Source: Bugula neritina
Lineage: Eukaryota; Animalia; Bryozoa
Length of the DNA: 64,000 bases
Direction of reading: 5' to 3'
Assembly: GCA_964035545.1 (NCBI GenBank)
Contig: OZ037766.1
Coordinates: 31,610,773-31,674,772 of the forward strand
Under the pieces are notes generated by a model. The model was not told where the DNA came from. It searched no databases and worked only from the letters and a program-made list of their open reading frames with translations. Each line of letters begins with the position of its first letter. Within the stretch, counting starts at the first letter, position 1. Of this stretch, positions 2,407 to 37,094 are shown in pieces. The translations under genes were made by a program, and so were the position numbers.

Positions 2407-5400
2407 CTAACTGCGGAGGCTCTCACCTGTGTCATCAAAGTAATCCGACCAATGAAACGACTGAGCGTCTTTAAAGCAGTAGGTATCTTCCAGATTTGTC
2501 CCCTCTTCCGTGTGGTACATGAAATAAAAGTTACACATCTCATCATGATTGGACGGTCTACAATAAACCAGCCAATCCAATGAACTTTGCTATAAATGCT
2601 CAAGAGAAGTATATGTAGTGTTGAAGCGGCTGCAAGAATGAATAATCACTTAAGAAGAATCAATATTCATTGCATTACTTTTCAGTATAACAAGTTCTCT
2701 ATAATATTTGCATATAAATCTTTAAGAAATACTTACCCCAATGAAGATGAGGGTTAGCTATTTCAATTGCAGATGTTATTGCTAATTAGTCAAAAAGAGG
2801 TTTCACTGAATAGAAAGCTGCAGACTAATATAGAGATTAGTGTCTCTGTGATATTCAGAGTGTGGAGGCTGGTAAAGCAGCAATACTACTTGCCCAATGA
2901 TGGTGTTTTCAGTCCTAGACACGCTGTTCATAGTGCACCTGGCAGCGATGATGTCGCCCTCCTGGATACTCATACCAGAGTGAGAGACCTGGTAGAACAT
3001 CTGAGGCTGCTGAGGGGACATCCTCCCTATCTCTGTCCACCTGCCATCTCTTATTCGGTATGCAGACGTCACTCTCCCTTTCAACAGCAGCAGACAACTT
3101 TCAATAGAAGCAAATGAGCTCTTGCTGTCACTCATGGCACACGTTTTACACTCAAAACATTTGTGAAAGAAGCAACTAACATTACTTCTTTGACTACTGT
3201 TGCTACTACTGCTTTTACTATTGCCAATTGTGTTGCTGCTACTACAACTAATAAGATTACTTCTTTGCCTGCGTCTACTACTATTGTTACTGCTACTACT
3301 CGTAGTAGTACCACTAGTAGTACCACTAGTAGTACTACTAGTGGTACTACTAGTGGTACTACTACGAGTAGTACCACTAGTACTAGTACTAGTACTAGTG
3401 GTACTACTAGTGGTACTACTACGAGTAGTACCACTAGTACTAGTACTAGTACTAGTAGTACTACTAGTGGTACTACTACGAGTAGTACCACTAGTACTAG
3501 TACTAGTACCACTACCATATTGACTATTCCAACCCACCGAGGTTGTGAGAGTGAGTTCTGTAAGCAAAAGGATAAATCGTAGAATTCTTTGACCATCTGC
3601 AGCCTGACTCCATGTGAAAGTCTAAAGCAGAGACCAAACTACGGGAAAAGACATAAACACTCATTATCAAATATGATTTCAAAGCACCAACATGATAAAA
3701 TTGAAACCGAGAGAAACACACCTGATTGGCCGGCGGGAATAAAGCCCCAGTTTCCCAAAATGTAAAACCCCAATTGCCTTGGCTGCCTGCATAGGGATAT
3801 TAAACAAATCAGCAAAGAGGTTGTGCAGTGTTTGCAGACACCAACATAACATATTCTATTACTTATGAAAGGGTGATACTCTTAAAAGTTGGTAGTTAGC
3901 TTTTAACTAATACTCAACTTTCATCAGTAACTTTGAGAGTAACTCCACTGTGATCTAGCTGATTGTCTGTGAAATGAATAAATATAATATTTGTATCACA
4001 ATGTAAGCAAAATAGACTGAGAATTAAGATATACAACACAACCCATTTAAAACAATGTTAATACTCTAAGAAGGGCTGATAATATAAGTCTATCTAATCA
4101 CTGCATTCATGCCTGCAAGACTATAAATACATGACTGCCACTAAACTACACTATCCAACATGGCTGCCACTAAACTACACTATCCAACATGGCTACTACC
4201 AAACTACATTATCCAACATGGCTGCCACTAAACTACACTATCCAACATGGCTGCCACTAAACTACACTATCCAACATGGCTACTACCAAACTACATTATC
4301 CAACATGGCTGCCACCAAACTACACTATCTAACATGGCTGCCACCAAACTACACTATCCAACATGGCTACCACCAAACTACACTATCTAACATGGCTGCC
4401 ACCAAACTACACTATCCAACATGGCTGCCACCAAACTACACTATCTAACATGGCTGCCACTAAACTACACTACCCAACATGGATGCCAGTAAACTATACA
4501 AATAAGCTTGGCTTACAAACTAGTATATTATCCAAAATGGCTGCCATCAAATGAAGCTATACAACATGGATGCCATACCTGTTGGTTTCTGCTTGTAATG
4601 TAATTGGAGAACCAGATACTGGATGTCTGTATCTCCGCCCACTCTAAGTCCCACCCCTTCTGGTAACTTCTTCTCAGGGGCATCTAAGGCCCAGGCGTAG
4701 ACTATCTTCTTAGGCATACCATGACGACGAACATCACCAACACTGCCACAAACTGGTGCGTCAGTTTCGCTGTGATCTCCACATCGCCTACAGTAACACA
4801 ACTTGTATATAATGTATGTGATATGCCAGTGGCCAGTGTAACACTCCATACTATGTTATTATATACCAATATATTTATTATATTACTGCAAAACAGCATT
4901 GATCTTTGATTATATTATATAATAGTATACCCCACATATAAAACTAGTATTATAACTGCTCAGTTAAAAAATCCTAAAAAAATTATCATGTTCCACACAT
5001 TATACTGTTGCAAGCAAATATAGCATCATAACAATGGCTATTACACCATATAGAGTTTCACACTCTATTATGTAATAAATAATTACCATTAACACAAAAT
5101 ACTTCTCAAACTGAATGGAACTTCAATACTAGTAGTAACCTTACCAGGTTTCAGCCAAAGAGCCTGGTACCTGACAGCCATATATCATCATGTGATGGGC
5201 TACATCTTTGGTGGCTTCGGGTGTGTACTTTACTGTAATATATACTTTACTGTAATATATACTTCACTGTAATATATACTCCACTGTAATATATACTTCA
5301 CTGTAATATATACTTCATTGTAATATATACTTCACTGTAATCTTTACTTTACTGTAATATATACTCCACAGTAATATATACTACACTGTAATATATACTA

Positions 5401-6107
5401 TACTGTAGTATATGCTATACTGTAATATATACTCTACTGTAATATATACTACACTGTAATATATACTTTACTGTAATACATACTTTACTGTAATATATAC
5501 TTTACTGTAATATATACTACACTGTAATATATACTATACTGTAGTATATGCTATACTGTAATATATACTCTACTGTAATATATACTTCACTGTAATCTTT
5601 ACTTTACTGTAATATGTACTTTACTGTAATATATACTACACTGTAATATATACTATACTGTAGTATATACTATACTGTAGTATATACTATACTGTAACAC
5701 AACCAGTAATACAGTAATATATACTTCACTGTAATAGGACCAGTAATACATGTCGTATAGAATACACAAGTCTATACACAGCAAAACTTACAAACATACT
5801 GATGGTGTGTAGAATTCAACCTTATAGAATGACAGACCAACTCATCAGCCTAAAAGAATTAAATTAAAAAGTCCTTAAATCTTTAAGTATTTCGAAATAC
5901 TCATCTGGTTTCCAAGTCCCTCTCCCAGCATAACTAACAACTAGCAAATTACAGTATTGAGTTGTGTTGCTTTGAAACAAATGTTGGTACTACGCAAACC
6001 TCTGAAGGCAGCACTCCAGGCATATGTATGCTGATGTCATAGGTGTCGGCTGCCGTAACGCTGACAGCAACTACTAGCGAGAGAAAGGGAGCTGCTGAGA
6101 GTAACAT
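2407..6107 (-). CDS. PHM: Peptidylglycine alpha-hydroxylating monooxygenase (monofunctional PHM, copper type II ascorbate-dependent)
   Basis: Exons 6107-6000 (signal MLLSAAPFLSLVVAVSVTAA...MPGV), 5849-5792, 5232-5145 (AHHMMIYGC), 4787-4579 (YAWALDAP...YLVLQLHY), 3966-3918, 3786-3722, 3621-3538 (PFAYRTHSH), 3077-2894 (PQQPQMFY...AARCTM), 2557-2427 (DEMCNFYFMY). All CuH (H,H,H) and CuM (H,H,M) ligands are present. The 3' end is either the read-through stop at 2407 or a short last exon at about 2238-2179 (EPAGSTLL...). No PAL/NHL domain follows. Confidence 0.93.
3280..3515. repeat. ACT/AGT simple repeat in PHM intron
   Basis: tagtac/actagt runs; explains the Thr/Ser/Val/Leu ORFs at 2803-3596. 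Confidence 0.9.
4131..4500. repeat. 30-bp minisatellite (atggctgccactaaactacactatccaac-type), ~12 copies
   Basis: Directly visible tandem units in a PHM intron. Confidence 0.9.
5226..5735. repeat. 17-bp minisatellite (tactttactgtaatata) containing the PHM exon-3 acceptor
   Basis: About 29 copies; on the minus strand the unit reads tatattacag|TAAAGTA. Confidence 0.9.
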
Positions 6108-35900: not shown

Positions 35901-37094
35901 CACTACAGAACACAGGAGATTGTCTTTTAGATCTCGGTATAGCATGGACTGCTCTGCACTCTACAATCAAGTCAGTTTAAATGTCTTCACAAGTATTCTC
36001 AATTATCGAGTAAAAGATTTCCAGACATTGATCTGTAAAACAGGTAAGCTTAAAACTAAGCTCTCACTTCCAAAGTAGTAGTGGCTGTATTCAGTATTCA
36101 GATAAATCTAGATTTAGTATTTAGATAAATGACTGGTTCAATATCTCCTTTCATCACTTTAAAAAATAGTTAGGCTTCCAACTGAGATGAGTGTAGCGTA
36201 GTTAAATTACCCCATACGATATAAAAAGCATCAGCAGGGATATCTGGCTATAATCTGTAGCTCAAATGGTCGTACACTTCAGAAAATAAGAGCTACAATA
36301 TTATTATATAAATTCTTCATACAAACTAATAATCTCTATAGCTGTTACGCATATACCTATAAACCTAAAAATGTTTCTATTTCTATAACTATGAACCATG
36401 AATTAGCCTTTTTTCATTTGACTGTTAGTGTTTTACTTTTCCTAATAACCATGTATTAGCCTTCTAATGTCATTCTTAATTAGTGTTTTAATTTTCCTAT
36501 TAAGATATGAATGAGTTGCAAATTATTTGAAAGTCAAATATAACTTTATGGCTCAATATTAACTCCATGAGTGTGGTTACACTGGTATCTTTCTTTGGAG
36601 TTATTTTCTCTACATCTTCTACCTGCAGAATGCGATATGACTGAAGCTATTGCACCCAGTTATACCTGCGAGGGAAATGACTTAACCGTTACTTGGTACA
36701 CAGACAAGTTGTTTCCACCTGCTGTAACTGAGATACCTGACCCTTGGAATTGCCTCCTCCAGATCCGATTAGAGCCAGCTACCCCCAGAATAGCTGTGAT
36801 GGCAGTGATCAACCACTATCCTATGTGAGTGTTGGTGTTATTATTAAAGAGCTAGACATCAAATTGATAATGAATTTTTCTAAAATAGCAACTGCTTCAC
36901 TTCATACAAACATATAGTATATTTGTTATAACCAGATTGAGTGGTTGGCAGACAGTATAGGAGTTATGTCCTCTCAACTGTTTAGTTTTGTACTTGGCTA
37001 ATGGGAAAATACTTGTGTGTGTTACAGGTTGATATCTCCTAAGGCAAACTCTAGAGGTGAGATGGTGGAAGTAGTTTTAGAAGAAGTAAACTGA
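23988..37094 (+). CDS. Subtilisin/kexin-type proprotein convertase (furin/PC1-like, S8B family), no TM segment found
   Basis: Exons 23988-24161, 24421-24525, 25173-25280 (RVKR|SA propeptide site), 26706-26846 (ILDDG, Asp), 28800-28965 (RHGTRCAGE, His), 29230-29402, 29820-30029 (WASGNGG, oxyanion Asn), 30258-30361 (HTGTSA, Ser), 30716-30822, 31522-31642 (SHKFGYG), 33972-34104 (LEHVQ), 34778-34943 (SPSGT...WGENPAGTW), 35458-~35514 (YQLDLYG), 36629-36824, 37028-37094. Phases are consistent; the last three exons are less certain. Confidence 0.93.
29704..29797. repeat. (TA)n microsatellite in convertase intron
   Basis: Directly visible. Confidence 0.95.
31646..33808. repeat. 17-bp minisatellite (tatactgacacatactg) split by the Tc1 insertion (31646-31932 and 33709-33808)
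   Basis: The same unit occurs on both sides of the transposon. Confidence 0.9.
31935..33708 (+). mobile_element. Tc1/mariner DNA transposon (DD34E type), full length with decayed transposase
   Basis: TA target duplication and 27-bp TIRs cagtg(a/c)tgtgaaaaagtttaaggacgc with one mismatch. Transposase remnants: paired-like HTH ...GSGRPK (32332-32640), [27 protein letters not shown], with stops and frameshifts. Confidence 0.93.
34450..34731. mobile_element. Small foldback-type non-autonomous element
   Basis: ggtaaaaatggcac repeats on the left, inverted gtgccatttttac repeats on the right, central aaccctaa-like spacer. Confidence 0.6.

Follow-up and report, generated by a model that had tools for sequence, protein, structure and literature searches.

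Here we describe a stretch of Bugula neritina DNA of 64,000 nucleotides (GenBank assembly GCA_964035545.1, contig OZ037766.1, forward-strand positions 31,610,773 to 31,674,772; hereafter the window) in which four consecutive genes occupy positions 2407-35579: the amidating enzyme PHM, two orphan proproteins that we call A and B, and a kexin/furin-family convertase. These four genes are real, constrained and linked, and the two enzymes are paralogous duplicates. As functional coupling does not follow from the sequences, the reading that we favour, tentatively and at a little short of an even chance, is that of a conserved neighbourhood of lineage-specific secretory-pathway duplicates in which A and B would be processed by a convertase, with the adjoining one as a plausible enzyme.

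Four adjoining genes in two related lineages

The genes follow one another in the order PHM-A-B-convertase in AT-rich DNA, PHM on the minus strand and the other three on the plus strand, and A and B are tandem paralogues. Their positions in the window are:

2407..6107, minus strand: stand-alone soluble PHM, ~313 amino acids (aa), from PF01082 and PF03712 on its exons and matches to rat PHM
6000-6107, 5144-5239, 4583-4780, 3917-3958, 3527-3637, 2878-3075 and 2410-2556, minus strand: PHM coding segments, with the ATG at 6107 and the stop at 2407-2409
6108..7714, no strand: intergenic region, 1,607 bp, separating the head-to-head start codons of PHM and A, from the sequence
7715..11502, plus strand: proprotein A, 170 aa, exons 7715-7778, 9699-9752, 10274-10471 and 11306-11502, stop 11500-11502
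14850..18500, plus strand: proprotein B, 172 aa, exons 14850-14919, 15806-15862, 17680-17877 and 18307-18500, stop 18498-18500
23988..35579, plus strand: kexin/furin-family convertase with no Cys-rich/transmembrane tail, from the Pfam pro-domain and P domain, furin alignments and collinearity with a paralogue on C1
~23988-24161, 24418-24522, 25173-25280, 26733-26846, 28800-28967, 29232-29396 and 29829-30029, plus strand: convertase segments 1-7, defined by homology
~30258-30359, 30714-30821, 31518-31586, 33973-34113, 34778-34945 and 35456-35579, plus strand: convertase segments 8-13, defined by homology

An earlier note on this DNA, made from the letters alone, had placed four adjoining genes in this order and orientation, and all are present where it put them; the distance of about 1.6 kb that it gave between the head-to-head ATGs of PHM and A (6107 and 7715) measures 1,607 bp. 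Between the four genes, intergenic open reading frames (ORFs) gave no Pfam match, and no tRNA or Rfam family was found; the sole other coding-like element among them is a Tc1/mariner remnant within a convertase intron.

The linkage claimed in that note is also present in a sibling lineage. GenBank contig VXIV02002119.1, from a sibling Bugula neritina assembly, is collinear with window 1110-28882 and keeps the gene order, and because the DNA identity is only 77-90% we regard this assembly as a diverged lineage. Synonymous divergence (dS) between the two lies at 0.12-0.25 across the four genes, and the intergenic region at 6108-7714 is ~86% identical. The ratio of non-synonymous to synonymous divergence (dN/dS) was 0.25 for proprotein A, 0.18 for proprotein B, 0.13 for PHM and, over its first five exons only, 0.12 for the convertase. 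All four genes are under purifying selection. With a DNA difference of 10-23% and this dS, the GenBank 'Bugula neritina' and the present genome look like different cryptic species of the complex.

A stand-alone PHM with intact catalytic residues

The seven PHM coding segments match Cu2_monooxygen (PF01082) and Cu2_monoox_C (PF03712), and the exons align to rat PHM structures in the PDB with HHM and LQLHY in register. The exons directly spell out THSH, the second copper site, and EMCNFY, which includes the Asn and Tyr that bind the substrate; with HH, H, HxH and M all recognisable as copper ligands, both Cu2_monooxygen lobes are present with their ligands (H107/H108/H172 and H242/H244/M314). 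The protein starts with a signal peptide and has no membrane anchor; its sibling orthologue is a GenBank model of 313 aa. Aligned to rat PHM, the C-lobe exon reaches 56 bits and the corresponding exon of the genome's PAM 46.8 bits. Judging from its residues, the window PHM is catalytically intact, and its sequence reads as well conserved, not as degenerate or divergent.

This gene is not the front half of a bifunctional PAM, since its stop lies at 2407-2409 and no PAL exon was found in window 1-2400 or in the 20 kb beyond. A canonical PAM, with PHM exons followed by PAL exons, is found at C2:1.681-1.689 Mb, on the same chromosome and 30 Mb from the window PHM. It holds the only PAL match of the genome, in which no stand-alone PAL was found. 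The earlier note was therefore right in seeing no PAL in the window, and its suggestion that the enzymes may be extra paralogues holds for PHM. The other ~13 Cu2_monooxygen loci of the genome gave no match to the PHM C-lobe exon. Copies that are not of PHM type form tandem clusters (at least 11 copies in four arrays, at C9:5.52-5.54, C4:5.72-5.73, C3:32.01-32.02 and C5:12.64 Mb) and are presumably DBH/MOXD-like genes. The introns of PAM (C2:1681000-1690999) are filled with long satellite arrays.

Stand-alone PHM is known from C. elegans (pghm-1, with pamn-1) and from Drosophila (Phm). Like the window gene, these are soluble monofunctional enzymes with copper and substrate-binding residues beside a full PAM, whereas the window PHM faces the gene of an orphan proprotein in head-to-head arrangement, with a convertase 18 kb away. 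A soluble PHM of this kind would rely on the lyase domain of the bifunctional PAM elsewhere in the genome.

One PHM intron carries a Ser/Thr-coding microsatellite (window 3275-3515, with periods of 12, 27 and 57 bp) that produces a mechanical ORF of 272 aa running in frame into PHM exon 6. We read it as intron because, in this frame, the exon before it runs into a stop.

Two putative secreted proproteins with conserved basic sites

Genes A and B are built alike, with four exons, three phase-1 introns, GT-AG splice sites and open frames of 170 and 172 aa, and their fourth exons are 60% identical. GenBank models from the sibling assembly back two of the splice junctions, that of A exon 2-3 (P0001) and that of B exon 3-4 (P0004). 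Exon 3 of A matches EB796_014468, a 'hypothetical protein' of Bugula neritina, at 92% identity, and the sibling counterpart of B is EB796_014470. The earlier note had taken ELYNPLNIFN as coding sequence of A, which fails, since A exon 2 ends at 9752 and these residues are intron; a PDF- or cerebrin-like reading of 'NGELYNPLNIF' was rejected likewise, the stretch lying beyond the exon 2 donor.

In each protein a hydrophobic N-terminus is followed by a mature part of ~149 aa that is Cys-free and has an isoelectric point of 5.6-6.0. The conserved blocks are Y-x-x-G-K-Y-P-K-R directly after the signal peptide, LKIISD.L...SILLD.IA.E, AIRKKLAETLADR and, near the C-terminus, ...EE..KF[KR]RVLT.WM.R[DE]LG. 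From the last of these, K-F-[KR]-R-V-L-T-x-W-M-x-R shows no variation among A, B, the orthologues of both in the sibling assembly and the sole outside relative (P0003, below), and G-K-Y-P-K-R is kept in A, B and the sibling orthologues. For P0004, the GenBank fragment that covers exons 3 and 4 of B, AlphaFold returned three helices and no compact fold, with a predicted template modelling score (pTM) of 0.24.

The family has two copies only in the genome, and relatives are scarce elsewhere. The A and B exons gave no Pfam match at an expectation value (E) of up to 1, including the Secretogranin_V, ProSAAS, CRF and granin models; the ESM Atlas held no feature neighbour for either protein, its structural neighbours being meaningless long helices; a word search returned the sibling orthologue alone; and the conserved motifs had no match in the literature searched. 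A HMMER profile of both exon-4 sequences, searched against 1.84 billion representatives, recovered the Bugula cluster and one further protein only, P0003 (E 1.6e-5). It is a gene's terminal exon, carried on genomic contigs of 1 kb (Logan, SRR25569780/81), and the only A/B relative outside Bugula; it keeps ...EEDRKFKRVLTKWMTREL... and is without the RKK or EKK pairs. A CRH/ELH-like reading of the LKIISD helix was dropped, there being no Pfam match and no amidation site. On this sequence evidence A and B appear as orphan, taxon-restricted (bryozoan) secreted proproteins, in line with the two orphan paralogous secreted precursors with basic sites announced by the earlier note. They would add an undescribed, constrained family of secreted proteins to the small known bryozoan peptide repertoire. 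Neither is among the 11 Bugula neritina neuropeptide precursors of Wong et al. 2016 (PMC4990251), which come from the same species complex and have, as A and B do, a signal peptide and dibasic architecture; A and B differ from them in having no amidation or family signature.

Hydrophobic N-termini together with the conserved KR and K-F-[KR]-R sites identify generic secreted proproteins, with processing predicted from sequence, and A and B are likely to be convertase substrates. In the course that we envisage, two acidic, Cys-free proteins of ~170 aa with three amphipathic helices would first lose their signal peptides, and furin-type convertases would then cut at two places, the conserved GKYP-KR and, close to the C-terminus, K-F-[KR]-R. 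This would release non-amidated products, namely an N-terminal peptide of ~15 residues and a C-terminal 18-mer, VLT.WM.R[DE]L.

Most of the first intron of A is taken up by one further feature:

7777..9355, plus strand: 35-bp tandem array, 46.7 copies, from Tandem Repeats Finder

The array begins exactly at the exon 1 donor. Each 35-bp unit carries the consensus 5' splice site CAG/GTAAGT, so that A intron 1 holds ~46 decoy donors. In the sibling assembly the array of the same intron is much shorter, at ~620 bp.

No visible substrate for PHM in A or B

For amidation, PHM requires a Gly at the C-terminus. No Gly with a dibasic site directly behind it (G-KR or G-RR) is found in A, B or P0003; the only Gly-basic pairs in A and B are G-K in GKYP and, in B only, G-R in VTGR, just as the earlier note had cautioned, and the two proteins do not qualify as amidated neuropeptide precursors. 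Because no conserved basic site exposes a C-terminal Gly, the products of A and B offer PHM no evident substrate, and on these sequences we take it that PHM does not act on either.

This bears directly on the proposal of the earlier note that the locus is a dedicated module like those for ribosomally synthesized and post-translationally modified peptides (RiPPs), in which the convertase would cut A and B and PHM would amidate the product, for instance after a non-canonical cut at the G-K of GKYP. In its favour are the conservation of G-K-Y-P-K-R in A, B and the sibling orthologues, the head-to-head position of PHM and A, and an apparently intact PHM. However, the residues preceding the Gly differ (YYM against YRS), a K followed by Y-P is a poor monobasic site, for which A has no upstream basic residue in support, neither protein has a G-KR or G-RR anywhere, and no PAL lies nearby. 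We consider the module very improbable. Microbial RiPP clusters resemble the locus in that precursor genes adjoin genes for a protease and a tailoring oxygenase, whereas here, in an animal, the genes have introns and promoters of their own, and the precursors show no motif recognisable as a substrate for the tailoring enzyme.

A shortened, fast-evolving convertase

The fourth gene encodes a signal peptide, an S8 pro-domain whose junctions read RVAKR and TRVKR, and a P domain, and has the motifs DDG, HGTRCAG, ASGNGG and GTSAAAP. The S8 pro-domain, the Asp/His/Ser triad, the oxyanion Asn and the P domain place it in the kexin/furin family, and ASGNGG sets it apart from PC2, which has Asp for the oxyanion Asn. 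Compared with furin, it keeps D258 and E236 and, within the motifs DDG and CDGYT, also D154, D306 and Y308, and is changed at E230I, E257S, D259S, T262I, D264E and G265R; the catalytic triad, the oxyanion Asn and the acidic residues of S1, S2 and S4 are all retained. The gene had been drawn as far as 37094 in the earlier note. Its domains and triad uphold the gene itself, and the end is to be revised, the simplest one being the stop at 35577-35579 in exon 13.

The genome contains eight P-domain convertase loci, the window copy and seven others, so the idea of an extra paralogue applies to the convertase as well. With one of them, at C1:11.72 Mb, the window gene is collinear exon for exon at 38-79% identity, and a tree of 195 columns, in which exon matches were placed on a reference, other paralogues are partly covered and the P0080 fragment was left out, joins the two as sisters (ultrafast bootstrap, UFBoot, 91) with branches of 0.54 for the window copy and 0.24 for the C1 copy. 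Relative to five of seven outgroups the window convertase is 3-6 points less identical than its sister; for the Fur2 reference the two are about equal, and the window copy is never the more identical one. The C1 sister (C1:11719349-11731000) continues into Cys-rich repeats, encoded by at least 8 exons, and a transmembrane segment at the C-terminus. Both are missing from the window copy, and no Cys-rich remnant was found downstream of its exon 13. Because of the long branch and the stop at exon 13 with no such remnant, set against the tail of the C1 gene, the window convertase appears to be a shortened, faster-evolving duplicate of a C1-type convertase, and its description in the earlier note as divergent stands. 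It would have lost the Cys-rich region and the membrane anchor yet kept its catalytic residues. Where RGD is usual, the C1 sister and the window convertase alike have RGHL/RGRL (RGRL in the window).

As to closer kinship, the tree groups the window convertase with furin-like paralogues and not with the copy at C4:6.67 Mb (no PC1/3 reference is in the tree), and PF12177 was not found in the genome. The PDB references for the family were furin and kexin only; of the word searches, one gave unnamed convertase fragments and another almost only insect Fur1. An identification as PC1/3 from FMSVH.WGENP and DGIVTD, which we take to be PC1/3 motifs, was rejected as unsafe: the beetle Fur1 P-domain motif is similar, the sister gene carries a tail of Cys-rich repeats with a transmembrane segment, and the tree position is furin-like. 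The window convertase resembles the Furin/Fur2/PC5-6 type in its RXKR pro-domain junctions, D/H/S triad, Asn oxyanion and P domain, and in having a sister gene with Cys-rich and transmembrane parts; it differs from that type by E230I, E257S, D259S, D264E, GTSAAAP and RGRL for RGD. PC5/6A and B are likewise a short soluble and a long membrane form, but the short form here comes from its own, faster-evolving gene, not from alternative splicing.

One of the seven other convertases, at C3:2.74 Mb, is PC2 (ASGDGG), and a true 7B2 lies at C3:4.34 Mb; PC2 and its helper are thus on the same chromosome, 1.6 Mb apart.

Neighbourhood, chance or partnership

Adjacency alone might be an accident of genome history. 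On that account the genes are real and functionally independent, secretory-pathway paralogues having been juxtaposed by tandem or segmental duplication. The absence of an amidation signal in A and B and of promoter words in common fits this, as do the flanking repeats and a LINE (long interspersed nuclear element) fragment, which suit a rearranging region, and the locus was selected post hoc from thousands of windows. Against it, the nominal probability that one of 2 PHM-type genes lies no more than 18 kb from one of 8 P-domain convertases in an assembly of 216 Mb is ~0.003, a rough and post hoc figure; the two genes in between are also secreted and have conserved convertase sites; and the order has been kept over the dS given above. 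We hold chance adjacency to be rather doubtful, though a serious contender.

A different role for A and B would make them inhibitors or chaperones of the adjoining truncated convertase, analogues of 7B2 and proSAAS whose K-F-[KR]-R helix docks in the active site. 7B2 (secretogranin V) and proSAAS share several traits with A and B, being small, acidic, Cys-poor, disordered or helical, and secreted, and having a basic convertase motif towards the C-terminus. A and B themselves are acidic, Cys-free proteins of small size and largely without structure; their conserved site with a basic P4 residue lies ~18 residues from the C-terminus, with both flanks conserved; and they adjoin a lineage-specific convertase. 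However, the resemblance is architectural only, neither Secretogranin_V (PF05281) nor ProSAAS (PF07259) was matched in Pfam at E up to 1, a true 7B2 exists at its own locus, and 7B2 and proSAAS, which show no sequence or profile similarity to A and B, have genes unlinked to their enzymes. By this analogy a binding role is conceivable, and we judge it quite unlikely.

Several points weigh against our preferred reading of a conserved neighbourhood with convertase-processed A and B. The adjacency of the four genes has been seen within one species complex only, that of Bugula neritina. AlphaFold puts K-F-[KR]-R within the third helix, an uncommon setting for a cleavage site and one that would also suit a binding helix, and the residues after the motif are conserved as strongly as the motif itself. 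The 3' end of the convertase is a prediction, and the enzyme is classed to the family and not to a subfamily, in a comparison made without PC1/3 and PC5/6 reference sequences. The regions upstream of PHM/A, B and the convertase had no sequence words in common beyond shuffles. Lastly, a sequencing-run search with a 6-kb stretch returned one DNA run and no RNA run, although this query was mostly intronic and may hide RNA.

What the earlier note called a RiPP-like, co-regulated and dedicated locus consequently divides in two: real, constrained and linked extra paralogues are there, while an amidation signal and common upstream words are not, which leaves the description with adjacency as its support. 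For the conserved neighbourhood that we prefer, the neighbouring convertase is a possible enzyme for the cuts in A and B. A stronger version has the truncated convertase and A/B form a dedicated pair born in bryozoans, with A and B as private substrates or as a 7B2/proSAAS-like partner, all of them, the spare PHM included, being expressed from a single chromatin neighbourhood in one specialised type of secretory cell; from the sequences we think this unlikely. In animals, genes for peptide-processing enzymes normally show no linkage to those of their substrates and partners. The dedicated pair, if true, would be the first description from an animal of a peptide-maturation module whose genes are physically clustered, and if the genes are functionally unrelated the locus is a tidy example of secretory-gene duplication. 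Either way, two enzyme paralogues and an orphan secreted family, all open to expression and assay, come together here as a concrete test of whether lineage-specific convertase duplicates gain private clients or regulators.

Repeats and flanking genes

The coding-like remnant in the convertase intron is as follows:

32266..33354, plus strand: Tc1/mariner-type transposase remnant, from Sleeping Beauty helix-turn-helix (HTH) and HTH_23 matches with broken ORFs, inside a convertase intron

The left 20-kb flank contains a LINE fragment, satellites and one TSP1-type exon, the LINE piece being a reverse-transcriptase fragment ~6 kb left of the window. To the right of the convertase lies an ankyrin-caspase gene.

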